Below, one piece after another: positions 1-63,460 of a stretch of 64,000 nucleotides of DNA. The position numbers and the translations under genes were made by a program. The DNA lies in contig NC_086115.1 in assembly GCF_963921235.1 (NCBI RefSeq), positions 17,422,001 to 17,486,000 on the forward strand, in the 5' to 3' direction. Each line of letters starts with the position of its first letter. The first letter of the stretch is position 1. The DNA is from Mobula hypostoma. Lineage: Eukaryota. Under the pieces are notes generated by a model, which was given only the letters and a program-made list of their open reading frames with translations, had not been told where the DNA came from and did no database searches.

Positions 1-3000
1 AAGGTGTCTGCATAACTCACTGGGTGCGGGGGGGGTTTGAACAGTGTCTGTATAACACACTGGGTGTGAGGAGGGTTGAATGGTGTCTGTATAACTCACT
101 TTGTGTGTGGGGGGGTGGAATGTTGTCTGTATAACTCACTGTGTGGGGGGGTCGAATGGTGTCAGTATAACTCAGTGTGTGGGGGGGTGGAATGGTGTCT
201 GTATGACTCACTGTGTGGGGGCTGGAATGGTGTCTGTATAACTCACTGTGTGTGGGGGGTGGAATGGTGTCTGTATAACTCACTGTGTGTGTGGAAGTGG
301 AATGGTGTCTATATAACTCACTGTGTGGCGGATGGAATGGTGTCTGTATAACTCACTGTGTGTGGGGGGTGGAATGGTGTCTGTATAACTCACTGTGTGT
401 GTGGAAGTGGAATGGTGTCTATATAACTCACTGTGTGTGGGGTGTGGAATCGTGTCTCTCTAACTCACTGCGTGTGGGTGTCGGTGTGGAAAGGTGTCTG
501 CATAACTCACTGGGTGCGGGGGGGGCGCGTTGAACAGTGTCTGTATAACACACTGGGTGTGAGGAGGGTTGAATTGTGTCTGTATAACTCACTGTGTGTT
601 TGTGGGAGGGGTGTAATGGTGTCTGTATAAATCACGGTGTTTGTTGGGGTGGAATTGTGTCTGCATAACTCATTGTGTGTGGGGGGGCTGAACAGTGTCT
701 GTATAACTCACTGTGTGTGGGGGTGGAATTGTGTCTGTATAACTCACTATGTGTGGGGGCGTGAAATGGTGTCTGTATAACTCACTATGTGTGGGGGGGG
801 TGGAACGGTGTCTGTATAACTCACTGTGTGTGTGGGGTGGAATGGTGTCTGTATAAATCACTGTGTCTGGGGGGGTTGGAATGGTGTCTGTATAAATCAC
901 TGTGTGTGGGGTGGGTGGAATGGTGTCTCTATAACTCACAGTGTGTGGGGGGTTGGAATGGTGTCTCTAACTCACTGTGTGTCGGGGTTGGTGTGGACTG
1001 GTGTCTGTATACCTCACTATGTGTGTGTGGGAGGGGTGGAATGGTGTCTGTATGAATAACTGTGTGTGGGGGGGTGGAATGGTGTCTGTATAACTCACTG
1101 TGTAGGGGGTTGGAATGGTGTCTGTATAAATCACTGTGTGTCTGGGGGGGTGGAATAGTGTCTGTATAACTCATTGTGTGGGGAGGTCGAATGGTGTCAG
1201 TATAACTCAGTGTGGGGAGGTGGAATGTCGTCTGTATAACTCACTCTTTTGGGGGGGATGAATGGTGTCTGTATAACTCAGTGTGTGTGTGGGGGGGAGG
1301 GTTGAATAGTACCTGTAAAACTCACTGTCTTTCTGTGGGGGGTAGAATGGTGTCTGTATGACTCACTGTGTGGGGGGGGGGTGGAATGGTGTCTATATAA
1401 CTCACTGTGTGGGGGATGGAATGGTGTCTGTATAACTCACTGTGTGGGGTGGGGTGGAATGGTGTCTGTATAACTCACTGTGTGTGGGGGGTGGAATGGT
1501 GTCTGTATAAATCACTGTGTTAGTTGGGGGGTGGAATGGTGTCTGTATAACTCACTGTGTGGGGGGGGAATGGTGACTGTTTCACTCAGTGTGTGGGGGG
1601 GTGGAATGGTGTCTGTAGAACTCACTCTGTGTGCAGCAGGGGTGGAATGGTGTCTGTATAACTCACTGTGTGTGGGGGGTGGTGGAATGGTGTCTGTATA
1701 AATAACTGTGTCTGGGGGGGTGGAATGGTGTCTGTATAACTCACTGTGTGTGGGGGGTGGTGGAATGGTGTCTGTATAAATAACTGTGTGTGGGGGTGCG
1801 GAATGGTGTCTATGTAACTCACCGTGCGTGGGGGGTGGTGGAATGGTGTCTGTATAAATCACTGTGTGTGTGGGGGGGGTGGAATGGGGTCTGTATAACT
1901 CACTGTGTGTCTGTGGGAGGGGTGGAATGGTGTCTGTATAACTCACTGTGAGTGGGGGTTGAATGGTGTTTATAACTCACTGTGTGTTGGGCGGTGCAAT
2001 GGTGTCTCTCGAACTCACTGTGTGTGGGTGTCGGTGTGGAAAGGTGTCTGCATAACTCACTGGGTGCGGGGGGGGAGTTTGAACAGTGTCTGTATAACAC
2101 ACTGGGTGTGAGGAGGGTTGAATGGTGTCTGTATAACTCACTTTGTGTGTGGGGGGGTGGAATGTCTGTAGAACTCACTATGTGTGGGAGGGGTGGAATA
2201 GTGTCTGTATAAATCGTGTTTGGGGTGCGGTATGGTGTCTGTAAAACGCACTATGTGGGTGGGGTTGTTGAATGGTGTCTGTATGAATAACTGTGTATGG
2301 GGGGGTGGAATGGTGTCTGTATAAATCACTGTGTCTGGGGGGGTGGAATAGTGTCTGTATAACTCAGTGTGTGTGTGGGGGGGGTTAAAAAGTACCTGTA
2401 AAACTCACTGTCTTTCTGTGGGGGGTAGAATGGTGTCTGTATAAATCACTGTGTCTGGGGGGGTGGAATGGTGTCTGTATAAATCACTGTGTGTGTGGGG
2501 GGGTGGAATGGGGTCTGTATAAATCACTGTGTGTCTGTGGGAGGGGTGGAATGGTGTCTCTCTAACTCACTGTGTGTGGGGGGGTGGAATAGTGTCTGTA
2601 AAACTCACTGTGTGTGGGGGTTGAATGGTGTTTATAACTCACTGTGAGTGGGGGTTGAATGGTGTTTATAACTCACTGTGTGTTGCGGGGTGCAATGGTG
2701 TCTCTCTAACTCTGTGTGTGGGGGTCGGTGTGGAAAGGTGTCTGCATAACTCACTGGGTGCAGGGGGGTGTTGAACAGTGTCTGTATAACACACTGGGTG
2801 TGAGGAGGGTTGAATGTTGTCTGTAGAACTCACTGTGTGGGAGGGGTGGAATAGTGTCTGTATAAATCGTGTTTGGGGTGCGGTATGGTGTCTGTAAAAC
2901 GCACTGTATGTGGGTGGGGTTGTTGAATGGTGTCTGTATAACTCACTGTGTGTGGGGGGTTGGAATGGTGTCTGTATAAATCACTGTGTCTGGGGGGGTG

Positions 3001-6000
3001 GAATAGTGTCTGTATAACTCAGTGTGTGTGTGGGGGGGGGGGGTTGAATAGTACCTGTAAAACTCACTGTCTTTCTGTGGGGGGTAGAATGGTGTCTGTA
3101 TAAATCACTGTGTGTGGGGGGGTGAAATGGTGTCTGTATTACTCACTGTGTGTGTGTGGGGGGTGGAATGGTGTCTGTATAACTCACTGTGTGTGGGGGG
3201 GGTGGAATGGTGTCTGTATAAATCACGGTGTTCGTTGGAGTGGAATTGTGTCTGCATAACTCACTGTGTGTGGGGGGGTTGAACAGTGTCTGTATAACTC
3301 ACTGTGTGTCGGGGGGTTGAACGGTGTCTGTATAACTCACTGTGTGTGGGGGTGTGGAATTGAGTCTGTATAAATGACTGTTTTTGGGGGGGAATGGTGT
3401 CTCTATAACTCACAGTGTGGGTGGGTGCAATGCTGTCTGTATAAATCACTGTGTGTGGCAGGGGTGGAATGGGGTCTGTATAACTCACTGTGTGGGGGGG
3501 TGGAATGGTGACTGTTTCACAGTGTGTCGGGGGGTGGAATTGTGTCTGTAGAACTCACTGTGCTTGTGGGGGGGGGAATGGTGTCTGTATAAATCACTCT
3601 GTGTGGGGGGGTGGAATGGTGTCTGTATATCTCACTATGTGTGTGTGGGAGGGGTGGAATGGTGTCTGTATAAATCGAGGTGTTTTGGGTGTGGAATGGT
3701 GTCTGTATAACTCACTGTGTGTGGGGTACTGGAATGGTGTCTGTATAACTAACTGTGTGTGGGGGGTGTAATGGTGTCTGTATAACTCAGTATGTGTGTG
3801 GGTGTGGAATGGTGTCTGTATAACTCACTGTGTGTGGGGGTGGAATAGTGTCTGTATAACTCACAGTGTGTGGAGGGGTGGATTGGTGTCTCTCTAACTC
3901 ACTGTGTGTCGGGGTTGGTGTGGACTGGTGTCTGTATAAATCACTGTGTGTGTGGGAGGGGTGGAATGGTGTCTGTATAACTCACTGTGTGTGGGGGGGG
4001 TGGAATGGTGTCTGTATAACTCACTGTGTGCGTGGGAGGGGTGGAATGATGTCTGTATAAATCACGGTGTTTGTTAGGTTGGAATTGTGTCTGCATAACT
4101 CACTGTGTGGGGGGGTGGAATGGCGTCTGTATAACTCACTGTGTGTGGGGTGGTTGGAATGGTGTCTGTATAACTCACTATGTGGGGGGGGTGGAATAGT
4201 GTCTGTAAAACTCACTGTGTGTGGGGGGCTGGAATGGTGTCTGTATAACTCACTGTGTGGGGGGTGTGGAATGTTGTCTGTATAACTCACTCTGTCGTGG
4301 GGGATGAATGGTGTCTGTATAACTCAGTATGTGTGTGTTTGGGGGGGGTGTTGAACAGTACCTGTAAAACTCACTGTCTTTCTGTGGGGGGGTGGAATAG
4401 TGTCTGTAAAACTCACTGTGTGTGGGGGCTGGAATGGTGTCTGTATAACTCACTGTGTGGGGGGTGTGGAATGTTGTCTGTATAACTCTGTCGTGGGGGA
4501 TGAATGGTGTCTGTATAACTCAGTGTGTGTGTGTGTGGGGGGGGGTTGAACAGTACCTGTAAAACTCACTGTCTTTCTGTGGGGGGTAGAATGGTGTCTG
4601 TATAAATCACTGTGTGTGGGGGGGTGGAATGGTGTCTGTATAACTCACTGTGTGTGGGGGGGTTGGTTGAATAATGTCTATATAACTCAGTGTGAGTGGT
4701 GGATGGAATTGTGTCTCTAGGAATCACTGTGTCTGGGGAGGTGGAATAGAGTCTGTATAACTCACTGTGTGTGTGTGGGAGGGGTGGAATGGTGTCTGTA
4801 TAAATCGTGGTGTTTTGGGTGTGGAATGCTGTCAGTATAATGCACTGTATGGGGGGGGGTTGAATGGTGTCTGTATAACTCACTGTGTGTGGGGGGGCGG
4901 AATGGTGTCTGTATAACTCACTGTGTGTGGGGGGGCGGAATGGTGTCTGTATAACTCACTGTGTGTGGGGGGGTTGGAATGGTGTCTGTATAACTCACTA
5001 TGTGGGGGGTGGAATGGTGTCTGTATATCTCACTGTGTGTGGGGGGGTTGGAATGGTGTCTGTATAACTCACTATGTGGGGGGGTGGAATGGTGTCTGTA
5101 TAAATCACGGTGTTTGTTGGGGTGGAATTGTGTCTGCATAACCCACTGTGTGTGGGGGGGTTGAACAGTGTCTGTATAACTCACTGTGTGTCGGGGGGTT
5201 GAACGGTGTCTGTATAACTCACTGTGTGTGGGGGTGGAATGGTGTCTGTATAACTCACTGTGTGTGGCGATGTGGAATGGTGTCTGTATAAATCACTGTG
5301 TGGGGGGTGGAATTGAGTCTGTACAACTCACTGTGTGGGGGGGTGGAATGGTGTCTGTATAACTCACTGTGTGTGGGAGCGTGAAATGGTGTCTGTGTAA
5401 CTCTGTGTGTGGGGGTGTGGAATTGAGTCTGTATAAATTACTGTTTTTGGGGGGGAATGGTGTCTCTATAACTCACTGTGTGTGGGGGTGTGGAATGGTG
5501 TCTCTATAAATCACTGTGTGTGGGGTGTGGAATGGTGTCTGTATAACTCAGTGTGTGGGTGGGGTGGAATGGTGTCTGTATAACTCACTGTGTGTGGGGG
5601 GTGTGGAATGGTGTCTGTATAACTCACTGTGTGGGGGTGTGGAATGGTGTCTGTATAACTCACTGTATTTGTCGGGGGGTGGAATGGTGTCTGTATAACT
5701 CACTGTGTGTGTGGGGGTGGAATGGTGTCTGTATAACTCACTGTGTGGGGGTGTGGAATGGTGCCTGTATAACTCACTGTGTGTGTGGGGGTGGATTGGT
5801 GTCTGTATAACTCTCTGTGTCGGGGGGGTGGGTGGAATGGTGTCTGTATAACTCACTGTGTGTGTGGGGGTGTGGAATGGTGTCTGTATAACTGACTGTG
5901 TGTGTGTGGGGGTGGATTGGTGTCTGTATAACTCTCTGTGTCGGGGGGGTGGAATGGTGTCTGTATAACTCACTGTGTGTGTGGGGGGGGGGTGGAATGG

Positions 6001-6025
6001 TGTCTGTATAACTCACTGTGTGTGA
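1..6025. repeat. Tandem satellite/minisatellite array, ~38-43 bp unit (core GGAATGGTGTCTGTATAACTCACTGTG plus variable (TG)n/Gn linker), roughly 150 units, intronic to the lipase gene; continues past the left edge
   Basis: Directly visible tandem repetition from base 1 to ~6025; all ORFs here are repeat translations. Confidence 0.97.
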
Positions 6026-6558
6026 GGGAACGATGCCCTCTGGAACTCGCAGATTGTCACAGCCGGTATTGAAGTATTGTGTCCATTATCCGTGAACACA
6101 ACTGGGTGTGTTAGAGGAGAGAGAGTCCTTTGTGAACATCACAATGCGGTCGAGGTGTTCCTGTGGAAATCACAGAGGCTGATGCCAAGTGCCAGGGTCC
6201 ACAGGGGCAATATGGACTGTAAGGCAGGACCTGACATTCTGAAAGTGGTATTTGTTGCACAGACAGTTCTCTGTCTTTGCGCGGGAATTTGATGGGCACA
6301 TGAGGGTGAATCATTTTCGTAGCATCTGGGGAATGGCTCTAGACTAGATGGGCTGACTGGCCTGAACAATTCTTGTGGACGTGCGGCATGTTCTGGAAAT
6401 GAAACTTGCACTGTTCCTGGTGCACTGGTCTTAAGACGTTAGTGGAGAGCTCCTGTATTCACGTTCCTCCCCAACACAGCGGGAGGGTGTCCTTTTAAGG
6501 GGCAGCCTGTGGCCCCCACCACAGTATCTGAGTGACACCCACATGTCCTGTCGTGTAC

Positions 6559-6678
6559 CTTCCCAGATCCCGTCCACATCCAGGATTGTTGAAATGAGAT
6601 TCTTCGAGCAGCCCGGCATGTTGTCCCCACCATTTGGGTAGAAGTCCACGTGACCACAAGGATAGATGATTCCAAACC
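6559..6678 (-). CDS. Lipase coding exon 7 ([41 protein letters not shown], lid region)
   Basis: 120 nt, cag|GG...GAAG|gt; matches the pancreatic lipase lid exon. Confidence 0.93.
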
Positions 6679-9600
6679 CTGCGACAGAAGCAGCGAATCA
6701 GACAGGCCAACCCCCCTCCCTCATTCCGCTAAATCCACCGCAGGGAGAGGCCAGTGCCCACTGGCCGCTCCGCTCGTCTTTGATATGGATCTCTCTTCTC
6801 TCACTACTCACCTCCCACTGATCCCTGTTATCAAATCTCCCCCCTTTCTCATTCATTCACTGTTTCAATCACCTTTCTTCATCTCTGACACCCTCGCACT
6901 CCCCCATGCTCTTTCTCTCCCACCCTCCATTGCGCACCCTGTCTCTCCCTCCCTCTTGGCATCTTTCCCCTTTATCCCCTGGGTTCTACCCCCACCCGGT
7001 ACCAGTTTCACCACTCCTGACTCTGTCCCGTCTGTGTTCTAGATCCCCGGCTGAGCCTGTTGCCGACCCAGTGCCTATGAGCCCCCGCGGTGTGAGGCTG
7101 TTTTGGCGAGGACATCCACCTTTGCTGGGGTACTTCAAGGAACCATCGGTGTGAATCACATCAACGAACAGTGCATCAGTGGGATCCAACCTCACCTCGA
7201 GAGGGGTGTTCTGGAAGTACGGGGCAACGGGATCGAGGCCTGCGGAGTAATCATGAATCAGTGTGATGTCCTCAGCTTCCTGTTATGATCTAATCCTGGC
7301 TGTTACCCACAGCCATTGCCATGAACCTCAAACTATATCGAAGAGGGCTATTCAGCCCACTGATACTATGGCAAATCATTGAGCAAACCCATTCATTTCC
7401 CTATAACCTAGCCTACCCACATTCCCATCAGTCCCTCCGACTCTCCGCACCCATACATCAGGAGCATTTTACAGCAGGTGATTAACTCCCTTACCCACAT
7501 GGTACTTGGTATGTGGGTGGAAAGTGGGGCACTTCAGGAGAGCATGCAGACTCCACACAGACAGTACTGGAGGTCAGGATTGAATCCATATCATGGGAAC
7601 TCTGTGTGTCCGCTCACTGTGCAGTCTTTCCCCATTAATATCAAACAAACCTGCAATCCTCTCTGTAAACAGTCCCAGTGAATTCCCCCCCTCCCCCCAT
7701 TTCACCATCAGCCCTTCCTCCCAGCCTCCCATCCCAACACCAACCATCCCGAATCCAGGCCTGAGGAGAGAACATTACCTGTAATCCGGGATATCCCCGG
7801 CTTCCTGCGTCCTGCCTCACCAGCGGCGTGGGCACCCAGTCCGTGCCCCACCAGGTATACATCTGGCAAGGTGTAATTGTAGTTGCTCTGGGATGCACAA
7901 AGACAAAGAGGATGGTGAGCTGACACACCTCTACTTCAGCACCCTAACTGGGAGCCCGAGCCCACCCCAATCTCTCTGTGAACTCCTTATGTGGCACGGT
8001 AGCGTAATGGTTAACATAACCATTACGCCGTAATGCTTTCCAGTGGCTCAAGAGGAATCTACAGAGATCCTCTTGTTTGGGGTTCAAACCCCACCACTTT
8101 CTGTCAGGAGTTTGTACCTTCTCCCTATGACCACATGGAGTTTTCTCTTGGAGCTTCAGTTTCCTCCCACCTTCCTAAAGTGTGCAAGTTAAAGTTAGTA
8201 AATTGTGGGCTTGCTATGTCGTGCCCAAAGATTGGCTACTCTTGCGGGCTGCCCCCAGCACGTCCCTGGTCTGTGTTGGTCGTTGACACAAACGACACAT
8301 TTCACTGTATGAATCAATATATATGTCGTAGTCATAGTCATAGTCATGCTTTATTGATCCCGGGCGAAAATGGTTTTCATTACAATTGCATCATAAATAA
8401 TAAATAGTAATAGAACCATAAATAGTTAAATAGTAATATGTAAATTATGCTAGTAAATTATGAAATAAGTCCAGGACCAGCCTATTGATTCAGGATGTCT
8501 GACCCTCCAAGGGAGGAGTTGTAAAGTTTGATGGCCACAGGCAGGAATGACTTCCTATGACACTCTGTGTTGCATCTCGGTGGAATAAGTCTCTGGCTGA
8601 ATGTACTCCTGTGCCCACCCAGTACATTATGTAGCGGATGGGAGACGTTGTCCAAGATGGCATGCAACTTAGACAGCATCGTCTTTTCTGACACCACCGT
8701 CAGAGAGTCCAGTTCCATCCCCACAACATCATTGGCCTTACGAATGAGTTTGTAATGAATAAAACAGATGTTTAACCTCTGTTCTTCCGGCCATCATGCT
8801 AAACAGCAAAGCCGTGCTCTGTGTGGAAATCCAACTTGCAGAAAATTGGGGTGGAGGAATAACGGGAAGCGACCTGCCGAAGGCCTCAGTAGAATAACCA
8901 GGGGGAGTGAAATGCAGATTATCAGTCTGATTACATTTCGACAGCGTGTCCTCAGTTCCCTTGTTTGGTTAAGAAGGACTGGTCATTGACCTGCTCCTCC
9001 TCGGTTGTTACATCTAATGAGATAATTATCCAACGAACAATTAACAATGGTTTATAGCAGATTTTTCCTGTCCTACCACAGTCCACACCCTGTTCTACAG
9101 AGAACTTAAAAAATAAAATCAATCCTTAAAGTAATCACAAAGAAGGCACACCAGCAGCTCTATTTTGTTAAGAGTCTTAGGAGATTTGGTATGTCACCAA
9201 ATCCCTTGCAAATTTCTATCGATGTATTGTGGAGAGCATTTTGATTCTACTTGGAGTGTGCATTTCCAGATAAAGTCCATGACAACTGAGGCATACTCAT
9301 CGAGGTTAGCAAGTGGAACAGGTCAAAAGCTTTAAGTTTCTCGGGGTCAATATCACAAACGACCTGACTTGGTCCAACCAAGCAGAGTCCACTGCCAAGA
9401 AGGCCCACCAGCGCCTTTACTTCCTGAGAAAGCTAAAGAAATTTGGCCTGTCCCCTAAAAACGTCACTAATTTTTATAGATGCACTGTAGAAAGCATTCT
9501 TCTAGGGTGCATCACAACCTGGTATGGAAGTTGTCCTGTCCAAGACCGGAAGAAGCTGCAGAAGATCGTGAACACAGCCCAGCACATCACACAAACAGAT

Positions 9601-15600: not shown

Positions 15601-18600
15601 GTCCCTCACTGACACTCACCTCCAGTGCATCGAGGAAGAATGCAATTTCTGCTCCCACCACACGGACGTTCTGCGCAGCCTGGCTAAACACACATTGAGA
15701 GCCACCATTCCAGTCCACACCGATGCAGTTGACACCATCCACTTGTAGAATAGTCTTGAAAGAGAGAGCAGATACTGAGATCGGTCAGATCCCCACTCCA
15801 CGGCAGCACCCACCACTGGAGGTCAGACGGCACGGAAATCAGCCACTCGGCCCATCCCTTGCATGCTGTAATCCAGCCTCAAACCCTTTCCCTCCCATCC
15901 AGATTCCAACTTCCCCAAGAAGTGTCAGCTCTGGGTGGATAAATGCCCATATTTTTATCTGATGCCCAATCCCAGGAGTGATCCGCTTTTCAGGTATTGT
16001 GAAAGTATTTAAAGTGAAAGTTTGCACATTTTTAAAGTTCTCATACACTGAGGGCCAAAGAGATTAAGTCCAAAGTTCTGTGAGTGCCGTGTAATTCAAT
16101 AGGACAGCAGGGGAACAGGCTCTTCGGCCTGTCAGTTGCAGACCGTCCATATCCCCCATTCCCTGCCCCTTTACTTGTCTGTCTAAAGGCTTCATTAATA
16201 CTGCTGTCATATCTAGTTCTACCAACTCTCGGCCAAAGTTCCAGGCACCCACCACTCTCTGTTTTTAAAAAAAACTTGCCTCACAAATCTCGTTTTGACT
16301 TCTCTCCTCTCACCACAAGCCTATGCATTCACGTATTTGACATTTCCGCTCTGGGACAAAGACTCTATCAACCCTTTCCATGCCTCTCATCGTTGTGTAT
16401 AGTTTATTTAGGTCAGCCCTCAGCCTCTGAGACTCCAAACAAATCATTCTAAATCTGTCCAAGCTGGTACTCACTAATCCAGGCAACACCATGGTGAACC
16501 TCTTCTGCACCCTCTCCAAAGTCTCCACACCCTTCTGTAATGAGGTGACCGGAACTGAACGCACATACTCCAGATGCAGTCTAACCCAAGTTTTATACAG
16601 ATGCAACATGGATTGCTATTCTTTATATCACTACCCCAATGTATCCCCACTTCCGGGGCTCCACTCCGGATTTGCTCCCGGAGCCTTTGTCTTCACCTTG
16701 TTCACTGCCCTACTTGCATCACTTCAGTAAACTATAGACTCACTCCCAAAATCCCTCTGCACATCAGTGTTCCTCAGGGCCCTGCCATTTACTTCCTTTT
16801 ACATGTGACCTCACTTTGTTCAGATTCAACTCATCTTTCATTTCTCCACACTCATTTCCAGCCGGTCTATATCACACTATGTCCTTTGACACATTTCTTC
16901 ACCATCCATATCCTCTACAGTTCTGCATACTTTCTAATCAGATCACCAGCATCTTTGTTGGTATAGATGTCTGGTGGTGGTTGGTTGGCATCTGTCTGTC
17001 TCGAAGAACAATGGATGATGATGATCATCAGCACAAGCCTGGGCAGAGGGTATGGAGATCCTGAGATGCCCAGTCGTCGAGATCCCCCTCTTGGCCTCAC
17101 CAGTGTAGTCCAAAGGAAACTTTATGAAGAAATACGTTTGGCACCAGCTTGGCTGCAGGAGCTGCTGGAAGGATGTTCCTTGATGTTCAGCTGGACTTGC
17201 TGTCTGGGTTTACTCCTGTAGCCTTCATCTCTTCCGAGATGTCTGGTAATTAGGACACATTGGGGCCAGTGCATTTTGGCCCAATTAAGCACCTGCCCTA
17301 ATTAGCCAAAGTTTCATGGAAATAGTTCAAAAGAGACAAGCCACCATTAACTGAGTAACAAATTATGTATTTAAATGAAAGGCAGAACAAATCAGTACAC
17401 TATCAGTACTACTACAGTACTATAATGGTTATCATCAGATGAATGAATCCTGTGTTCGCTGCCATCTTCTTCTGATTAACTGTAAATGAACAAAATCAGC
17501 GTAGACACCTGGTGCAGATCGTGGACTGTCTTCATATAATCCTTTCGAGGATTGCATTCTCCAAATCTTCATTTTCATTGTTACGTGTAAGAGGATTATT
17601 GATACCTTCAAGTTCTTCATCGTTCCTAACTTGCTGAAGTAGTGAAATCGTTTTATTTTCACTCCTAGATGTATCTGGCATCTCCAAGCCCGAGTGTTTG
17701 AAACTTCAGTGAGCAAAGCAGTTCTCAATTGTCTTACTGTTTATTTCTCACCAACTATCACTGCTTTTTGGACACAAACACACTAGCCTGATGCTATTTA
17801 AAAACTGTTCACTCTGAGCACATGACTGACGCTAGTTAGAAACCATTTGCCAATAGGGTCCTGCCCCAATTAAGCGACATAGTGCCCCACAGAAATAAAT
17901 GAAACACCGGCTGTTTTCTAGATTATTTTTTGTTCTTTAAGAATTGGTCCAATTACCCAATGGCCCAATTAGCTGGAATCCACAGTAATTGATATAAAAT
18001 CACAAAGAACAGATATTCCAGCACTGATCCCTGCAGAACACACTGGTCACAGACCTCCAGCCATAAAAACACCCCTCTACCATTACCGCCAGTTTTCCCT
18101 GGACAAGTTAATTCCAGATACAATTTACCAGATCCACACTTTACACTGTGGATTCTACGTGCCCTGATCATCTAGACCAGGCTACCACGAGGGAACATGT
18201 TGAACATTTCACTTAAGTGAACTGCTCCAGCCCGATCAGTCACCTTCATCATATCCTTAAAATACTCAAACAAGTTTGTTAGATAGGCTGTCTGCCGTAC
18301 AATGCCATGCTGACTATCCCTAATAAACCAAGGGGTTTCCAAATGTGAATAAATCCTGTCCCTGAGAATCTTCAATAATTTCTCGATCATTGATATAATG
18401 CTGGGATGGAATAGGCGCCCTTCCTTCGTTCATCGAATCTGCCCATCATCCCTTCCCTCACCCTCCAACCACAGTAGTGTAGCGGTTAGAGTGATACTGT
18501 TGCAGCTCGGGGCGTTGGAGTTGGGAGTTCATTCCTGGCGTCCTCCGTAAGGAATGTCGGTACGTCCTCCCCGTGGGATGTGCGGGCTGCCCTAGCTTCC

Positions 18601-21600
18601 TCCCACGCTCCAAGACCTTCCGGGCAGGTTAGCTGGGCATTGTACATTGTCCTGTGATTAGGTTGGGTTGAATCGGGGTTGTGAGAGGTTGCAGAAGGGC
18701 CTATTCTGCACAAAATCTCGAAATAAATAATCCCTCGTGTAAGGTCACTTCTCCCCAAACAGACTCACCAGTTCTAGAGGAACGGCAATTTTCTTCACAC
18801 CACATCACACACCGACCTGCTCCTCTCACCTCACTCAGACTGTCAGATCACACCTCACACTGACACAGATCACACCTCACACACACACCTCAGTCTGACT
18901 GTCAGGTCACACCTCACACTGACACAGATCACTCCTCACACACACACCTCAGTCTGACTGTCAGATCACACCTCACACTGACACAGATCACTCCTCACAC
19001 ACACAATTCACACTGACACACAGATCACACCTCACACTGACACAGATCACACCTCACTCTGACTGTCAGATCACACCGACACAGATCGCACCTCACACTG
19101 ATACAGCTCACAACTCGCACTGACACACAGATCACACCTCACGCCTCACACTGACACACACACACTTCACATTGATACAGCTCACACCTCACACCGACAC
19201 ACGGCTCACAACTCACACCGCACTGTGCCCCACAACTCCCACCTTGCACAGATCCACGACCCATTGGGAATCTCCATTTTTCAGATGTCCGTGGACGACC
19301 AGGACACTCTTCTGATTGGTGTCAAAGTTAGAGGCAGCAACCGTCTGCGGATGTGTCCCGCTGATTTCCTGCAGAGACAACACGATTAAAACTCTTTAAA
19401 TGAGACCGCGTATCCCTGGCCTGGTTGCAGAGTGGGACATGGGCAGGAGCAGCCACAAACAGGGAGAGAGGATGGGGACTAGGGGACAAAGTGGGTGAAG
19501 GACAGCCCTTCTCCTGAACTCCTCGCTCTGGGAGAGAAACCTCTGGCTCTGGCTGAGAAAAGACGGAGCTCCACTCTCACCCTACAGTCGTGGTTTGACC
19601 ATAGCTCAAGGCTCTACTAAGGGATCCGTAAAACCACACACCACAAGACATAGGAGCAGAATTAGACCATTCGTCCCATCGTGTCTGCTGCTCCGGTCCA
19701 TCACGGCTGATTTATTATGATCCCTTTGAATCCTGCCATCTCCCCGTGTGCCTTTACCAATCAAGAACATATCAACCTCAATGTACCCAATGGTTTGGCT
19801 TCCACTGCCGTCTGGAATAACAAATTCCACCGATTCATTGCCCCCTGGCCAAAGAAATTCATCCTCTACTCTGTTCTAAAGGGAGAACAGAGAAGAGGGG
19901 TCCTTCTATTCCGAGACAGCACACTCTGGTCCTAGACTCCTCCACTACTGGAGCCATCCTCGGCAAGATCACTCTATCTGGCCCTTTCAATGCTTTCCTA
20001 AATTCCAGCAAGTACAGTCCTAGAGCCATTAAATGTCCCTCGTACGGCACTGCCTCACACCAGGGTCCCTGTAGTTACAGGAGCAACGCGGAAACGTAAC
20101 TGCGCGCAACAAGATCCCACAAAGAACAATAACGCTTATTGCTGTGTACCTGTCCAAACATCCTTTAAGCATTGTAATTGTACCCTCCTCTGGCATCTTG
20201 TTCCATATACCCGCCACCCTGTGCTTCGCAAGCTTACCCCTCAGATTCCCTTCTCACCTGAAACTATGCCTTCTTGCTTTAGACTCCCCCACTCAGGGAA
20301 AGACCACGATCGGCCACGTCAGACGACATGGCAAACGACGAGCGAGCGAACGCCGGGAAAACGACCGTGACCATCCACCTTATCTACACAGTTGATGGTT
20401 TTATAAACTTCTGTCACCCTGCCCCACACCCCAGTGTGGCGGCCAGCGCAATGCTTTACGGTGCCAGCAATCGGCTTGTAATTCCCGCCGCCGTCTATAA
20501 GGAGTGTACGTTCTCTCTGTGACGGCGTGCGTTTCCGCTGGTTTCATCCCACGTTCCAAAAACGTATGGATAGGGTTCGTGTGTTGGAGGCAGGCACTAC
20601 AATTTACTGTATGTCTCAATATATGTGATAAATAAACTCTGTAAACTTTATCTTTATCTCCTCCTCTCCAGGGAAAACAGTCCCAGCCTGTCCTGTGTCC
20701 CACTGTAACTCGAGCTTTCCAGACCGGGCAACGATCCGGGCAATGAACCGTCCCTAGATTAAAAGCACCTTCGGCTGTTTGGCCTGGGTGAAGGTGGTGT
20801 TACCTGGAAGCTGTCGGGGTTCTCCCTGGTGTAGAGCAGGAAACGGGTGCCGATTTTCTCAGGGCTCCAGGGGTCCCTGGCAACGGGTCTTTCCTTGGTC
20901 CCTGTCCATGGGTATCCACGGGCGAAACAGCCCAGCTTATCGTAGCATATTTCATCCGGTCCACCTGCCAACACTGAGACACAATGAGGTACCAATGAAG
21001 TGCAGTCACTGGGTGACGAACAAGCTCTCCTGTACGCCTGTCACACCGCAACCGTACCTAGCTGATTACATCTTGATGCCCAGGCTCCCAAATCAACACC
21101 CTCACCATCACTCTGCCTTCCCAGATGCTGCCTGACTCGCTGAGTTCATCCAGCAGTTTGCTGTTCACTCCAAATTCCCGCGTCTGCAGTGCTCCGTGTC
21201 TCCGAACTTGCAGAGCTGTAGTTCCCTTTGTTACCCCCACTCTGTAGCGGTCACTACTCCCCCGCCCCCCGCCGTTCTACCCTCCAGATCCAAAATTTTG
21301 CTCCCTAACGTATCCGATCTGGTCCCAAGTTCGCCATTCGCATTTCTGACTCTGACCGTCATCAGCTTCTGAATTCAGTTCACATTTTAAAACGGTATCA
21401 TGAAAAACTCTGCTGGAATATTGAGTTCAGTCTGGTCACCTCATTATAGGAAGAATGTGAATGCTTTAGAGAGGGCGGAGAGGAGATTTATGAGGATGCT
21501 GCCTGGATTAGGGAGCATGTTTTATAAGGAGTGGTTGAACATGCTTTGGGGTGAAGGAGGATGAGAGACGACTTGGTAGAGGTGTACGGGATGTTAGGAG

Positions 21601-22369
21601 ACACAGAGTGGTCAGTAACCACCTTTTTTCCTAGAGTGGAAATGGCTAATATGAGAGAGCATAATTTTAAGGTGACTGGAGGAAAGTATTGGGGGGGGGG
21701 TAATAGGTGCTTTTTTTAAATATAGAGAATATCGTTTTTTATAGAGTGGGAATGGAAAGAGCGTGGAACACACTGCCAGGGGTATAGCCGTGGAGGCAGA
21801 CACATTAGGGACATTATTAAGAGACTCTGAGATAAGCACATGGATGAAAGAACAATGCAGATCTATGCGGGAGGGAAGTGTTAGATTGATCATGTAGGTC
21901 AGCACAACATTGCGGGCCGAAGGGTCTGTGCTGTGCTGTAAGTTCTATGTTCCATAAAACTCTCATCCCTGTTTCCTATCCCCCATGCCTGCCCACTTCC
22001 CTGCCATTGTCCCCTCCAGCAACCTTACAACAAATCTCTGTCTGACTCTAATTCTCGCCTCCTGACCTCCTCCAATTTATCTCCCCTGGGCTAAGACCCG
22101 AGATCTGGAACTCTCCCCCTAATCCTACTCCGCTTCTCTCTACTCCGTGAAGGCGTCCCTTTAAGCCAATTTCTGCCTTTATTTCACTACCTGATTCAAT
22201 TAAATTTTATCTATGACTGCAAGCCCACCCATAATGCAGGGGGGGGGGGGGAAACACCGTATCTCTCAGTTTAAGCACCGAAGGAACCAAGCCATTAACA
22301 AATGCTTTCTGGTCAGTTACCGTTGGCTCTGGTGAGAAGGAAAGTGATGGGGATCCACAGACTCAGCAT
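6559..22369 (-). CDS. Pancreatic lipase family gene (PNLIP/PNLIPRP-like), partial: join of 22369-22321, 20964-20804, 19368-19243, 15754-15620, 7887-7779, 7239-7120, 6678-6559; catalytic Ser replaced by Gly; remaining exons lie left of the window
   Basis: All exons GT-AG and phase-compatible, 820 nt open. Signal peptide [17 protein letters not shown]; [10 protein letters not shown]; NCIGVDW; [20 protein letters not shown]; [14 protein letters not shown] and lid sequence match pancreatic lipases. Confidence 0.93.
7120..7239 (-). CDS. Lipase coding exon 6 ([41 protein letters not shown]; catalytic Asp)
   Basis: 120 nt, canonical splice sites, GLDP motif. Confidence 0.93.
7779..7887 (-). CDS. 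Lipase coding exon 5 ([37 protein letters not shown]; nucleophile elbow GHGLG)
   Basis: 109 nt, canonical splice sites; GGA codon at 7842-7840 where Ser is expected. Confidence 0.93.
7990..8325 (+). mobile_element. tRNA-derived SINE
   Basis: GGCACGGTAGCGTAATGGTT head and GGTTCAAACCC B-box; related copies elsewhere in the window (e.g. ~18470, ~48770, ~50800 and ~61630, some on the minus strand). Confidence 0.6.
8327..8755 (-). mobile_element. Rex1/Babar-type LINE 3' fragment with (GTCATA)n tail
   Basis: ORF 8482-8724 SHPLH...[11 protein letters not shown] resembles the LINE RT C-terminus; microsatellite tail at 8327-8346. Confidence 0.7.
9253..12852 (+). mobile_element. Rex1/Babar-type LINE 3' fragment, split by a CR1 insertion and itself inserted in an older Rex-like fragment (~9125-9247 and 12858-13210)
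   Basis: [15 protein letters not shown]...[12 protein letters not shown] (9313-9596) resumes at 12444 ([10 protein letters not shown]...NSFFPTVI); candidate TSD TACTT at 9248-9252 and 12853-12857. Confidence 0.75.
9597..12439 (+). mobile_element. CR1 LINE, 5'-truncated ORF2 (APE endonuclease + RT), one premature stop at 11834-11836
   Basis: GITETW, YRPP, GDFN, SDH endonuclease motifs; [24 protein letters not shown] motifs; ORFs 9728-11836 and 11849-12343 share a frame; (TTTCTATG)n tail. Confidence 0.95.
14132..14886 (-). mobile_element. Non-autonomous PIF/Harbinger DNA transposon with transposase remnant
   Basis: TIR AGGCTGATTTATACTTGTG at both ends; TTA/TTG flanks; [28 protein letters not shown] is Harbinger-transposase-like; second copy at 60179-60953. 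Confidence 0.8.
15375..15535. repeat. 38-bp minisatellite, ~4.2 copies, each with an internal inverted repeat CCTGTTAC/GTAACAGG
   Basis: TGTTACAG recurs at 15375, 15413, 15451, 15489 and 15527. Confidence 0.95.
15620..15754 (-). CDS. Lipase coding exon 4 ([45 protein letters not shown])
   Basis: 135 nt, ag|...|gtgagt; NCIxVDW and [11 protein letters not shown] motifs. Confidence 0.93.
16100..16620 (-). mobile_element. Degenerate CR1 3' fragment
   Basis: [12 protein letters not shown]...LERVQKRFT similar to the CR1 ORF2 C-terminus. Confidence 0.75.
18800..19225. repeat. Low-complexity tandem repeat (CACACCTCACACTGACACAGAT-like units) just inside the intron after lipase coding exon 3
   Basis: Direct reading. 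Confidence 0.9.
19243..19368 (-). CDS. Lipase coding exon 3 ([42 protein letters not shown])
   Basis: 126 nt, canonical splice sites; SNF...HG motif; not in the ORF track. Confidence 0.9.
20804..20964 (-). CDS. Lipase coding exon 2 ([53 protein letters not shown])
   Basis: 161 nt, canonical splice sites; CY..LGCF, PWSP, TRFLLYT motifs. Confidence 0.93.
22321..22369 (-). CDS. Lipase coding exon 1, signal peptide [16 protein letters not shown](G)
   Basis: ttctctttcag|ATG...AACG|gtaac; hydrophobic leader; phase 1 matches the next exon. Confidence 0.85.
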
Positions 22370-27410: not shown

Positions 27411-29438
27411 GTGGGAGCTTGTTCCCATTACTACCCCGCTCCTCCAGCTTTAACAACTTCAAGGATGGAGGAGTGCTGTTAGTAATATCACCGTGACATG
27501 AGGTATAACTCTGAGCTATGGGAGTTTCCTGCCCCGTGTGATATAGCGGGGTTCCCTGTCCCTGTCAGATGCACGTGGTTACTCTATCCATGCGATTCAC
27601 TGTAGTCTCCTTGTGCAATGTACAGGGGTTGCACATCCCCTTTGTGATACATTGCTCCACCTTATTCCTGTATTGTTAAATTAAATTCAAAGATTCCAAG
27701 CTTCAAAGCACATTAATCATCAAAGAACATATAAATTATACATCCTTGAGATTTGTCTGCTTACACGGAGCAAGAAACCCGAAAAGAACCCATTTGTAAA
27801 ACAAAGAAAGACCAATCCCCAATATGCAGAGAAAGAGAGACAAAAAAGGACAGATCGTGCAGACGTTAGAAGCGAGCAACAACAACAGCAACATGGAATT
27901 CTTAGATCCGAATCCCTGGAGCAGCCCAGAGTCGGCACAAAGCCTCAGTATTCAGTTCGGTGTGCTAGCGGGACAAATCACTGCGAAGTTCGCAGACACG
28001 AAGCACGGCAGCCGGGGTCTGTCTCATAGCCCCAGTGTCGCGGAGAGAGGAGTGAAAATTGGTTCATTATTGTCATATGCAGTGAGGTGAAGTGAAAAAA
28101 CTTGGTTTTGCTTTCGTTACATCAGTACAGTATATTGACGCAGTACGAGAGGAAACAATAACAGAATGCAGAATAAAGTATTACAGTGACAGGGAAAAAG
28201 CAGCGTGGGCGGACAATAAGGTGCAGGGCACAACGAGGTACTTCTGGCAGCTTGGTGCTACTGCAGTTGGTGGTGATGTCTCATATTTCAGGAACCCAAG
28301 TTTGATGCCAACCCCAGGTCCAAACAGTACCTCAGTGGCAGAGCTGGCGGAAGATGATGACACATCACAGCGGCAGTGAAGGTGGAGACTCCATTAAGAG
28401 AATAAACCCTTAGCGGAACATGATCCTCGGCTCGGGTGGTTTCACAGCTGCTACTCAGGTGCTGTCCATGTGGAGTTTGCCTGCTCTGATGGTGACGTCG
28501 CGGAATCTACTTATGCTCTGGATTTCTCCAACATCTCAACAATGTACTTTATTTAAAGGGTTGTGCACTTTACCACAGAGTGGGTTATAGTGGCAAGAAT
28601 AAGTGTTTAATATAAGTATAGCGACAGTAGATGTAATAGTACAAATTATATTCAGTTTTATTGTCAAATTGAAAGTCAAGTTTATTACCATATACACAAG
28701 CCCATACGTGGAAAGATGCAATAGAAAGGTTATGTGCACCGGCATCACAGGCACGCACGTCATATAAACTGCATTCACAAGAAAATATGAATGTAACATA
28801 AATTATATACAATATTTACACAATTAGAATGAGTTCCTTCAGCACTTGGAGTTGCTTTATAAAAAAGCCTATTTTAGTGCAAAGTGATGAAAGTGGTCAC
28901 ACGGCTCCTAAATGAACCGAATAGTTGAAGAGAAGTATTTTTCTTTGAACTTGGTGGACTTAAGACTTCGCTACCTCGCGCAGAATGCTAGCTGCGAGAA
29001 TAAGGCATGGCCGAAATGGTGGGGACTTTTGATGATATTTGTTGCCGAGGTTTCTAACAACTTGCAACTGGGATGCGCAACACAGTTGAGATACTTTAGC
29101 CTATCTGCTCAAAATCCCCAACACAATTTGATATTCTAGGATTCTCATCACTCTGAGATACACTGAATCAGAATCAGATTTATTATTATTGACATGCCAT
29201 GAAATCTGTTTTTTTAAACAATGATTTCCCCTATTTGTATATTATTGGTGAACTTTTCCTGACCTTGTCCATGACGAAGTTCTGACATGGGGGCCTGTCC
29301 CTTTAATTGATCTTCAAACTGTAAAGGAAATTCGTATCGCCTTAAGTGTCGTAAAGAGTAGCTGGGAACTGTGCCAGCACTACCGTAAAGTGAGAGCCCA
29401 CTTCTATAAGTGCGGTCGGGTGTCGTAAAAAGCGGCAG

Positions 29439-30040
29439 ATGGTGAAAATGGCGGCGGTGCCGGAGCCGCCGAGTGACGGGCCGAGCCCGAGTCCCGCTGT
29501 CTCCGCGGCGCCCACCTCTACCCCGACTCCCACCCCGGCCCCCGCCGTCGCCGCTGCTTCTCCGGCGCCCTCGCCGTCGCCCAGCCCGTCGCCAACGCTG
29601 GCGGTGAAGACGGAGACGGCGGAGAGCCCGGGGGAGGGAGGCAGGCCGGCGGCGGGTCCCGGCCCCGAGCTCAGCGAGCGCCAGACCTTGCTCGCCGTGC
29701 TCCAGTTCCTGAAGAAGAACCGCTTCCGCGAGGCCGAGGAGACGCTGCGGCGGGAGGCCAGCGTGCAGGAGGCGCTGGACGATGCGATGAGAACGGCCGG
29801 TCCCCGCGGCCCCGATTCAGTGCACCAGCCCGACGTCAGTTCGGTGCTGTCGGCCTACAGCAACCAGGGAGACCCCAGCCTCTACGAGGAGTACTACAGC
29901 GGCCTGAAGGCTTTCATCGAGGCGGCGCTGGACGCGCTGAAAGCCGAACTGGCCAGCTTGCTGTACCCGGTGTTCGTGCATCTGTACCTGGAGCTGGTCT
30001 ACAACGAGCACGAACGTGAGGCCCGGCACTTCTTCCAGAG
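29439..30040 (+). CDS. TAF5: TAF5 coding exon 1
   Basis: ORF 29439; donor AG|gtcagc; CpG island. Confidence 0.93.
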
Positions 30041-62169: not shown

Positions 62170-63460
62170 ATCACATCCGAAATCCTGTCTGCCCACTACC
62201 CTGGACCCCCATCAATTTGCCTATTGCACCAACAGGTCAACAGAGGACGCCATCTCCACAGCACTTTACTCTGCCCTGACCCACCTGGACAGCCCCAACT
62301 CTTAGGTCAGAATGCTGTTCATTGACTTTAGTTTGGCATTCAGTACTGTGATTCCCCTCCAAGCTGATGGCCAAACTTCGCCAGCTTGGTATCACCTCAT
62401 CCCTCTGCAATTGGACCTTGGACTTGCTGACTAACAGACCCCGATCAGTTAAGTTAGACAACCTCTCCTCCTCCGCTCTCACCCTGAACACCGGCGTGCC
62501 TCAAGGCTGTGTGCTGAGCCCTCTTCTGTACTCCCTTTTCACCTATGACTGCGTTCCTGTACATGGTTCTAACTCCATAATCAAGTTCGCAGATGACACC
62601 ACAGTAGTTGGTCTGATCAGAGGATGACGAGACTGCCTACAGGGACGAGGTCCAGCACCTGGCTGCGTGGTGTGCCGACAACAACCTGGCCTTTAACACC
62701 CAGAAGATCAAGGAGATCATTGTGGACTTCAGGCATGCTAGGAGCCACACTCACGTCCCCATCTACATCAACGGAGCTGTAGTGGAGCGTGTATCAAGCT
62801 TCAAGTTCCTTGGTGTTCACATTTCCGAGGATCTCACCTGGTCCCTGAACTCCTCCATCCTGATCAAAAAGGCACAACAGCGCCTTTATTTCCTGCGGAG
62901 CATCAAGAAAGCTCACCTCTGTCCCAGGGTACTGACGGGCTTTTACCACTGTACCATTGAGAGCATACTCACCAACTGCATCTCAGTGTGGTATGGCAAT
63001 TGTCCCGTATCGGATCGCAAAACAGTCCAGCGTGTGGTGAAAACTGCCCAGCGGATTATTGGCACCCAATTGCCCACCATTGAGAACATCTACCATAAAC
63101 GCTGCCTGGGCAGGGTGAAAAGCATTATCAGGGATGCATCTCACCCTAACCATGGACTTTTTACTCTCTTCCCATCCGGTAGGCGCTACAGGAGCCTCTG
63201 CTCCCGCACCAGCAGGCTCAGGAAGAGCTTCTTCCCTGAGGCTGTGACCCTGCTGAACCTCACATCACAGCACTAAGCAGTATTGCATCCGTATTGTACT
63301 GTCTCAGTACTTTTATATTTGTGTGCTGTAGCACTTACTTTTTATTCACAGTTATTTTGTAAATAACATTCTTTGCATTTCTGGTCAGATGCTAACTGCA
63401 TTTCTTTGGCTTTGTATCTGTACTGGGCACAATGACAAAGTTAAATTGAATTTAATCTAA
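62170..63460 (+). mobile_element. Rex1/Babar-type LINE RT 3' part
   Basis: PQGCVLSPLLYSLFTYDC, KFADD, FKFLGVHISEDLTWS; stops and frameshifts. Confidence 0.85.

Follow-up and report, generated by a model that had tools for sequence, protein, structure and literature searches.

Pancreatic lipases are textbook serine hydrolases, and removal of the nucleophile serine from lipases of the alpha/beta-hydrolase fold abolishes their activity. Within the lipase superfamily, the dipteran yolk proteins have lost the catalytic Ser and persist in a role other than catalysis. Mammalian PLRP1 has long been puzzling, being inactive yet conserved, with its triad intact. PMC8287333, citing Roussel 1998, describes PLRP1 as devoid of lipase activity although its triad is complete, and gives 13 exons for PNLIP and PNLIPRP1. 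In a comparative study of mammals and fishes, the triad was conserved in all species examined (PMC9386070). Stingrays have a separate pancreatic lipase that is active and colipase-dependent (PMC7094207), and a "Pnliprp1" transcript has been reported from catshark pancreas (PMC4362833). Literature searches retrieved no description of an elasmobranch lipase that lacks the Ser.

The window, i.e., the entire 64-kb stretch of ray DNA that was analysed, carries on its minus strand (22369-6559) seven coding exons for the N-terminal portion of a protein of the pancreatic lipase family (PF00151). All exons are in phase, free of stops and bounded by GT-AG introns, as the first-pass annotation had reported; our gene model comprises 276 codons rather than the 273 given there. 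The six larger exon pieces all match PF00151, at consecutive profile positions from 2 to 258. By length and phase, the seven exons fit the 12-coding-exon pattern of the orthologues described below. Judged from its sequence, the gene is the ray (batoid) member of a pancreatic lipase paralogue specific to elasmobranchs, and the window holds seven of its twelve coding exons, counted from the 5' end. Neither a second lipase copy nor the 3' exons were found elsewhere within the 64-kb window, and scans for tRNA genes and Rfam families gave no matches there.

Coding exon 1 (22321..22369) consists of the ATG, a signal-peptide-like stretch of 16 residues and one further nucleotide. The AG acceptor in front of it points to a probable non-coding exon further 5'. 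The N-terminus matches those of the Pristis and Narcine orthologues, and the 49-nt length is the same in Narcine, Heptranchias and Chiloscyllium. The Rhincodon model features an extra 15-nt first exon followed by a 49-nt exon, and exon 1 of Pristis is annotated as 79 nt from a start located further upstream. Exon 2 (20804..20973, 170 nt) encodes Cys4 and Cys10 and covers PF00151 positions 2-55. Exon 3 (19243..19368, 126 nt) encodes the beta5/oxyanion region H-G-H, in which His (CAT, 19287-19285) occupies the position of HPL Phe77, together with Cys90. Exon 4 (15620..15754, 135 nt) encodes Cys101 and, where HPL has Tyr114 in the pocket, a Phe (TTT, 15688-15686). Exon 5 (7779..7887, 109 nt), flanked by an AG acceptor and a GT donor, encodes 36 residues including the nucleophile elbow G-H-G-L-G. 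Exon 6 (7120..7239, 120 nt) encodes the catalytic Asp176 (GAT, 7234-7232) and the beginning of the beta9 loop; the position of PLRP1 Val179 is occupied by Val (GTT, 7228-7226), and that of Ala181 has kept Pro. Exon 7 (6559..6678, 120 nt; donor G/GTACAC) encodes the rest of the loop, Cys237 and the first 17 residues of the lid. Reading of exon 7 through its donor, where an in-frame G-T-R mimics the conserved E-G-T-R, was rejected because the exon measures 120 nt in all orthologues (5/5) and similarity is lost at once beyond the donor.

It had been claimed that the signal peptide, the conserved cysteines, the catalytic Asp and the lid are all kept. The signal-peptide-like N-terminus, Asp176 and the cysteines (Cys4, Cys10, Cys90, Cys101 and Cys237) are indeed encoded here; the lid is represented in the window by residues 237-253 only, and Cys261, the disulphide partner of Cys237, lies beyond the window and is present in the orthologues.

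At the position of the nucleophile Ser152, the elbow GHGLG has a Gly, encoded by GGA at 7842-7840; this reading, first made in the earlier annotation, was borne out when the minus strand was re-read. The exon-5 piece aligns without gaps with the PLRP1 structures 1rp1 and 2ppl, and the Gly is opposite the catalytic Ser. Of the triad Ser152-Asp176-His263, Ser152 is thus replaced and Asp176 is kept; His263 is encoded outside the window and is present in all orthologues. Since Ser152 is replaced by Gly, a Ser-dependent acyl-enzyme cannot form, and the protein is predicted to be a pseudo-lipase. By descent the gene belongs to the lipase family, but its product is not a serine hydrolase.

Orthologues surfaced in a profile search with an alignment that included the exon pieces of the window. 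Searching exon 2 with phmmer against 50% cluster representatives returned only relatives at ≤67% identity, although it brought up GHGLG proteins of Ciona and Discoglossus. With a profile that combined the exon pieces with four full-length lipases of bony vertebrates, the best 120 matches were all from bony vertebrates. Orthologous loci were mapped by exact-word chaining and splice refinement, as tblastn missed exons. GHGLG orthologues, a search for which the first-pass annotation had proposed, occur in related species, namely in Hypanus, Pristis and Narcine, which represent three further ray orders (four ray lineages with that of the window), and in one shark, the sevengill Heptranchias. Of the sampled orthologues, that of Hypanus sabinus is nearest to the window gene (88% identity). 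The Gly codon is GGA in Pristis and Narcine and GGT in Heptranchias; Hypanus was read as protein. All these orthologues are full length and have Asp176, His263, the lid and a PLAT domain (PF01477 in Hypanus and Heptranchias, and also in the model of the Narcine orthologue). In contrast, GHSLG is found in six galeomorph shark orthologues, including those of Heterodontus, Hemiscyllium, Chiloscyllium, Rhincodon and Stegostoma, and the Ser codon is AGT in both galeomorph sharks whose DNA was read. The orthologues match PF00151 over positions 2-336 of 336 (E = 1e-123 to 1e-130), and the coding exons they have in common are identical in length. The AlphaFold model of the Narcine orthologue superimposes on human PLRP1 (2ppl) with TM scores of 0.86/0.90. 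RefSeq names the Gly-bearing proteins "pancreatic triacylglycerol lipase-like" or "PLRP2-like".

Synteny and phylogeny both support the orthology of these genes. The first coding exon of TAF5 (TFIID_NTD2; 29394..30047, plus strand) lies head-to-head with the lipase gene, about 7 kb from its ATG, and the same arrangement is found wherever the flank was read (the window, Pristis, Heptranchias and Rhincodon). In the gene tree, the window gene and its orthologues form one clade with 100/100 support. This elasmobranch clade stands apart from mammalian PNLIP, RP1 and RP2, which form a clade of their own, and the elasmobranch "RP2-like" paralogue is likewise separate from the ray gene. By the tree, the clade has no 1:1 orthologue among the mammalian paralogues. 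The ray protein is hence an analogue and not an orthologue of PLRP1, as it does not group with mammalian RP1.

The closest presumably active relatives are the Ser-bearing galeomorph orthologues, and not the mammalian PNLIP and PNLIPRP1-3 that had been put forward for comparison at first. These proteins, called "inactive PLRP1-like" or "PLRP2-like" in RefSeq, are 73-76% identical to the ray protein, have the same 12 coding exons and, in Rhincodon, where it was checked, the same TAF5 neighbour. They share the features of the clade, i.e., H-G-Y/H, Val178, a polar residue at position 209, M-G-Y-x-I-G and the lid sequence, but they keep Ser152 and Tyr114. PNLIP and PNLIPRP2 proteins, including the active stingray and smooth-hound lipases, belong to the same family and have the same fold, lid and PLAT domain (54-59% identity over 276 residues); they differ in having GHSLG, Phe77, Tyr114, Ala178 and a hydrophobic residue at 209.

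The best match in structure and in sequence is mammalian PNLIPRP1 (1rp1, 2ppl), a secreted two-domain paralogue of pancreatic lipase for which no lipase activity is known. This protein and that of the ray both have Val at the Val179 position, and by analogy the same mode, binding without hydrolysis, is plausible for the two. The routes to inactivity would differ. PLRP1 retains Ser152 and is silenced via Val179 and Ala181; the ray protein has the Val and has lost the nucleophile, but keeps Pro at 181. Dipteran yolk proteins are more distant, being highly diverged insect storage proteins without PLAT; the ray protein is closely related to vertebrate lipases of the pancreatic type, and only a few pocket positions set it apart from orthologues that look active. 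The same Ser-to-Gly change to GHGLG occurs in a "pancreatic triacylglycerol lipase-like" protein of Ciona intestinalis and in a "PLRP2-like" protein of Discoglossus pictus. Both sit on long branches, in unrelated lineages; PLAT is missing from the Ciona protein, and the Discoglossus protein is truncated and has also lost Asp and His. Their placement indicates that they are events independent of the ray clade.

The loss of Ser152 is accompanied by a change in the acyl pocket, since every Gly-bearer has Phe at Tyr114, which the Ser-bearing orthologues keep. Position 77 is Tyr or His within the clade, and Val at the PLRP1 Val179 position and the polar residue at pocket position 209 are found throughout the clade, Ser-bearers included. 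Catalysis may already have been dispensable in the Ser-bearing ancestor. V-E-A, as in PLRP1, occurs in Heterodontus only. Asp176 and His263 are invariant in the Gly-bearers (the four sampled ray lineages and Heptranchias), and the lid is nearly invariant among rays.

Coding sequences of the clade evolve under purifying selection. Pairwise dN/dS values range from 0.12 to 0.18, with bootstrap upper limits ≤0.27. Codon branch models, fitted with our own maximum-likelihood implementation to 6 taxa and 470 codons, gave an omega of 0.188 for the Gly-bearing rays and of 0.183 for the Ser-bearing shark branches. Omega = 1 is rejected for the Gly-bearers (2dlnL = 201, p = 1e-45), and equality of the two values is not rejected (p = 0.90). 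The catalytically dead N-terminal domain (omega 0.10-0.14) is constrained at least as much as PLAT. The dN/dS estimates, which had been proposed as a check, lie at 0.12-0.19, far below 1, and the terminal branch of the window (0.245) is also far below this value.

An essential residue has thus been lost from a protein whose orthologues in several species have full-length reading frames under purifying selection, the combination that characterizes a pseudoenzyme. The pseudo-lipase is maintained and not decaying, because one and the same change persists, under strong purifying selection, in rays and in the sevengill shark; the first-pass annotation, which had proposed a maintained non-catalytic protein of the lipase fold and not a decaying pseudogene, is supported by the full-length GHGLG orthologues and the low dN/dS. 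We consider it likely that the TAF5-linked paralogue of rays is a maintained Ser-less pseudo-lipase that acts by binding. In rays, replacement of Ser152 by Gly, which goes along with that of Tyr114 by Phe in the acyl pocket, would preclude Ser-dependent catalysis. The signal-peptide-like N-terminus, the disulphide cysteines, Asp176 and the lid, with His263 and PLAT in the orthologues, are retained. The protein is predicted to be secreted, most likely by the pancreas, and would act through its lid and PLAT domain by occupying the lipid-water interface and/or colipase. It may serve as a competitor or modulator of active pancreatic lipase or as a lipid-binding carrier, as proposed for mammalian PLRP1. 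The colipase-contact residue Tyr404 is Asp or Asn in the clade, as in colipase-independent lipases, which weakens the version in which the protein is a colipase decoy.

A pure binding role does not require the strict retention of Asp176 and His263, which argues against it. Their invariance in all Gly-bearing orthologues, the strong constraint on the N-terminal domain and the coordinated pocket changes (Y114F, F77Y/H) would also fit a protein that is still an enzyme, in which Asp176-His263 activates water or another nucleophile or a different reaction takes place, so that the chemistry was changed and not abolished. We regard this as unlikely. No other nucleophile is apparent at or next to the elbow, and a clade-specific Cys preceding G-H-V-D-F is shared with the Ser-bearing orthologues. 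Loss of the nucleophile is, moreover, known to inactivate lipases of the alpha/beta-hydrolase fold, and Asp and His may persist for structural reasons, as in other pseudoenzymes.

Equally improbable, in our estimate, is that the copy in this genome is a recent pseudogene, the 3' half of which was lost or disrupted by a minisatellite, leaving seven exons as an undecayed remnant. The start of intron 7 (1..6558, minus strand) contains about 157 copies of a 38-bp repeat at positions 3-6022; the array begins 540 bp past exon 7, is at least 6 kb long and runs off the left edge of the window. The C-terminal halves of the orthologues gave no tblastn match in the window, and exons 8-12, which encode His263, the second lid Cys and PLAT, are located beyond this edge. 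Moreover, the species' own protein was absent from the top matches when the protein collection was searched with a profile containing the exons of the window; the protein may have been left out of the annotation, or its gene entered there as a pseudogene. The omega of the terminal branch (0.245) is also slightly above the background of 0.164. Against this reading, omega = 1 is rejected for that branch (p = 7e-7), none of the seven exons is disrupted and all have canonical splice sites, and the satellite sits in an intron and not in an exon. Complete orthologues likewise have a long and variable intron 7, which spans 1-50 kb among them and in Heptranchias measures 50 kb versus 10 kb.

In principle, the Gly codon could reflect an error in assembly or base calling, or a rare allele in the individual sequenced. 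This can be practically discounted, as GGA is two substitutions away from any Ser codon, identical GGA codons are present in the independent Pristis and Narcine assemblies (which confirms in practice the earlier view that a single base-call error is unlikely), GGT is found in two separate Heptranchias contigs, and the Hypanus RefSeq protein has Gly.

The maintained pseudo-lipase may have arisen once or twice. In AU tests, neither monophyly of the Gly-bearers (p = 0.41) nor monophyly of the sharks (p = 0.11) was rejected. We tentatively suggest, with somewhat less than even confidence, two independent losses of the nucleophile at this TAF5-linked locus, one in rays and one in hexanchiform sharks, both by Ser152 to Gly with Tyr114 to Phe and with no relaxation of purifying selection. 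Hidden paralogy as an explanation for the Gly in Heptranchias is disfavoured by the shared TAF5 synteny; tandem duplication and reciprocal loss at the locus is a possible source of this residue.

If independent, the two losses would be a replicated natural experiment, indicating that the conserved job of this paralogue needs no catalysis and, by analogy, that the same may hold for the long-puzzling job of PLRP1-type proteins; Tyr114 would also be identified as functionally coupled to the nucleophile. For annotation, the RefSeq lipase names imply an activity that, on sequence grounds, the Gly-bearing proteins should be unable to have. A vertebrate lipase of the pancreatic type that lacks the nucleophile has been kept in four sampled ray lineages and in the sevengill shark under a constraint similar to that on its Ser-bearing orthologues. 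Ser and Gly orthologues that occupy one syntenic locus and differ at a handful of pocket positions provide a clean comparative system, suited to asking what a secreted lipase fold does without catalysis, be it competition for colipase or the interface, or the carriage of lipids.

The first seven coding exons of the M. hypostoma lipase gene lie on the minus strand of the window, at 22369-22321 (exon 1, 49 nt), 20973-20804 (exon 2, 170 nt), 19368-19243 (exon 3, 126 nt), 15754-15620 (exon 4, 135 nt), 7887-7779 (exon 5, 109 nt), 7239-7120 (exon 6, 120 nt) and 6678-6559 (exon 7, 120 nt). All have AG/GT borders and are phase-compatible, and together they form 276 codons without a stop. The first-pass annotation had described them accordingly, except that it counted 273 codons. 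It had also reported that the nucleophile serine is replaced by glycine, which we confirm: exon 5 encodes V-G-H-G-L-G-A-H, and the glycine in the place of Ser152 (human pancreatic lipase, HPL, numbering) is specified by GGA at 7842-7840. Stop-free pieces around six exons match consecutive positions (2-258) of the PF00151 (Lipase) profile. The exon 5 piece aligns without gaps to the PLRP1 structures 1rp1 and 2ppl, in which the catalytic serine faces this glycine.

The predicted product has a signal-peptide-like N-terminus and retains Cys4/Cys10, Cys90/Cys101, Cys237 and the catalytic Asp176, as previously noted; of the lid, also listed as kept, the first 17 residues are present in the window. 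Neither a second lipase copy nor the 3' exons encoding His263, the second lid cysteine and the PLAT domain were found within the window. Exon lengths in orthologues fix the exon 7 donor at 6559, and an in-frame G-T-R past it was therefore rejected as coding and assigned to the intron.

A phmmer search of 50% cluster representatives with exon 2 returned relatives with identities of at most 67%, a word-index search with the exon 5 open frame gave no hit, and a profile of full-length bony-vertebrate lipases and exon pieces matched mostly bony vertebrates. Elasmobranch proteins were retrieved with a profile (A3) built from three truncated lipases and six exon pieces. BLASTP of the 276-residue model against all fetched proteins identified GHGLG orthologues in the rays Hypanus sabinus (88.5% identity), Pristis pectinata (82%) and Narcine bancroftii (78%), and in the shark Heptranchias perlo (75%). 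GHSLG is found in Hemiscyllium ocellatum (76%) and Heterodontus francisci (73%). The same motif stands in two Chiloscyllium species, Rhincodon and Stegostoma, which belong to the Hemiscyllium 90% cluster. The remaining proteins are at most 59% identical to the model. These matches identify the source of the window as a ray. GHGLG occurs independently in lipase-like proteins of Ciona intestinalis (345 residues), which lacks PLAT but keeps the Asp and His, and Discoglossus pictus (384 residues, long branch), which has also lost the Asp and His.

The N-terminus of the Hypanus RefSeq model XP_059804079.1 is probably mispredicted. This model starts in a different upstream exon, lacks a signal peptide and translates an in-frame extension upstream of exon 2; comparison with the window places the counterparts of these parts at 22738-22682 and 21039-20977. 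An exon 1 as in Pristis, Narcine and the window would supply a normal M-L-S-L-W... start.

In maximum-likelihood trees, Gly- and Ser-bearing elasmobranch proteins form a single clade with a long stem (100/100 support), in which the window gene is sister to the Hypanus gene (99-100%). The clade is distinct from an elasmobranch "RP2-like" paralogue and from the bony-vertebrate PNLIP, RP1 and RP2 groups. Since mammalian PNLIP, RP1 and RP2 group together, the clade is a 1:1 orthologue of none of them. For Pristis, Narcine, Heptranchias (two contigs), Chiloscyllium and Rhincodon, coding sequences were extracted from genomic DNA. The recovered orthologues have twelve coding exons (49/155-161/126/135/109/120/120/119/130/112/168/67 nt); the first seven in the window measure 49/170/126/135/109/120/120 nt, exon 2 being 170 nt versus 155-161 nt. 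Two annotations differ at the 5' end: Pristis is given an upstream start, which makes its first exon 79 nt, and Rhincodon an additional first exon of 15 nt. TAF5 lies head-to-head with the lipase gene, its plus-strand exon 1 (TFIID_NTD2, 29394-30047) starting some 7 kb away from the start codon of the lipase gene, and a WD40 exon standing at 46334-46828, also on the plus strand. Pristis, Rhincodon (Ser) and Heptranchias (Gly) share this arrangement, with a spacing of 4-7 kb, and the lipase genes beside TAF5 are positional orthologues.

The locus also contains several repeats. Intron 7, downstream of exon 7, is occupied by a minisatellite (3-6022) whose 38-bp unit is repeated about 157 times (77% matches, plus strand G-rich, GC skew +0.54) and which continues past the left edge. 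In Heptranchias, intron 7 measures 50 kb in one contig and 10 kb in the other. A plus-strand LINE within intron 4 (9572-12340) has a 754-residue open frame with endonuclease (PF03372/PF14529) and reverse transcriptase (PF00078) domains, then one stop and a 168-residue continuation, and hence looks young and nearly intact. Open frames resembling fragments of a Tc1/mariner-type transposase (52285-52644, minus) and of reverse transcriptases (34429-34890 and 62617-63273, plus) occur inside the apparent TAF5 span, where they are probably intronic, and beyond. A short minus-strand stretch (7990-8050), roughly 100 bp ahead of exon 5, resembles the head of a tRNA-derived SINE (g-g-t-t-a-t-g-t-t-a-a-c-c-a-t-t-a-c-g-c-t-a-c-c); neither ARAGORN nor Rfam called a tRNA or RNA family there.

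HPL numbering was assigned by alignment, with S152, D176, H263, F77, C237 and C261 as verified anchors. Tyr114 (window 15688-15686) is a pocket residue touching ligands in 1LPB (PMC7587340). Gly-bearers all have Phe here (TTT or TTC), and Ser-bearers all have Tyr, encoded by TAC in the two with DNA read. Tyr114Phe thus accompanies Ser152Gly in 5/5 Gly-bearing sequences and is absent from all Ser-bearing ones; as only one or two independent events are involved, the pattern is striking but does not amount to a statistical test.

Codon 152 is AGT in Rhincodon and Chiloscyllium, GGA in rays and GGT, one transition from AGT, in Heptranchias. Rays, galeomorph sharks and Heptranchias form a trichotomy in the gene tree, and AU tests are compatible both with a single Gly-bearing clade (p = 0.41) and with shark monophyly (p = 0.11). 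Shark monophyly is accepted and, together with the shared synteny, leaves two scenarios. We consider two parallel origins of Ser152Gly and Tyr114Phe more plausible than a single origin followed by reversal of both changes in galeomorphs; each course would require four steps.

Other positions differ from HPL in the whole clade. The oxyanion-hole Phe77 is Tyr (His in the window, Hypanus and Pristis), and the acyl-groove Ile209 is Lys, Gln or His. Ala178 is replaced by Val throughout; among about 300 fetched family members, Val at 178 occurs elsewhere only in eutherian PLRP1. The reactivating positions of PLRP1 are Val179 and Ala181, numbers that agree with the 1rp1 alignment. Reverting two PLRP1 positions restores activity (Roussel et al. 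1998, cited in PMC8287333). Lid residues 237-261 are near-invariant among rays; of the colipase contacts, Lys400 is retained and Tyr404 is Asp or Asn. For the Narcine orthologue, an AlphaFold model (pLDDT 79; lid and beta9 loop of low confidence) best matches human PLRP1 (2ppl, TM 0.86/0.90), followed by PLRP2 and PNLIP. The window-type protein has a pancreatic-lipase fold in which an acyl-serine intermediate is impossible. With Asp176 and His263 retained, there is a low probability that Gly-bearers have some residual activity or an altered chemistry.

At 470-492 residues, with PF00151 and PLAT, the Gly-bearing orthologues are all full length, and each has Asp176, His263 and both lid cysteines. 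Pairwise Nei-Gojobori dN/dS among four Gly-bearing genes is 0.12-0.18 (bootstrap upper limits at most 0.27). Our own implementation of a GY94-type codon model (F3x4 frequencies, branch classes) was applied to six taxa on the tree ((Chiloscyllium, Rhincodon), Heptranchias, (Narcine, (Pristis, window))). The ray-crown branches, all Gly, had an omega of 0.188, compared with 0.183 on Ser-bearing shark branches and 0.196 on the two branches carrying the Ser/Gly change. Fixing ray omega at 1 was rejected (2dlnL = 201, p ~1e-45); forcing it to equal the Ser omega was not (2dlnL 0.02, p = 0.90). On the window terminal branch (271 shared codons), omega was 0.245, and omega = 1 was again rejected (2dlnL = 24.6, p = 7e-7). 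By domain, omega is 0.10-0.14 in the "dead" N-terminal part and 0.16-0.30 in PLAT; constraint on the former is no weaker than on the latter, and no weaker than in the Ser-bearing pair. Gly-bearers are conserved as strongly as Ser-bearing orthologues; ordinary purifying selection has acted on the gene ever since its serine was lost, and no relaxation was detected. The proposal of a maintained gene, with dN/dS far from 1, therefore stands, and decay into a pseudogene is refuted for the clade and unlikely for the copy in this genome.

The evidence on when catalysis ceased to matter pulls in different directions. Unchanged omega, the clade-wide PLRP1-type Val and the polar residue 209 suggest that function was catalysis-independent before the serine was lost. 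In contrast, the strict Tyr114Phe/Ser152Gly coupling and the preservation of Ser and Tyr in 6/6 galeomorphs suggest that the serine still matters where retained.

We infer that the protein is secreted and acts by binding, probably at the lipid-water interface and/or to colipase, via the conserved lid and PLAT domain. Such a protein would compete with or modulate active pancreatic lipase, or carry lipids. Rays do possess an active pancreatic lipase, the stingray enzyme being colipase-dependent (PMC7094207), and mammalian PLRP1 is a precedent for a conserved inactive paralogue (PMC8287333). A "Pnliprp1" transcript expressed in catshark pancreas (PMC4362833) may be the clade's member. RefSeq holds orthologues under automatic names implying activity, and our literature search found no paper on a Ser-less elasmobranch lipase; a comparison of vertebrate digestive lipases published in 2022 reports a conserved triad in every species it covered (PMC9386070). 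We class the gene as a pseudoenzyme inside the pancreatic lipase family.
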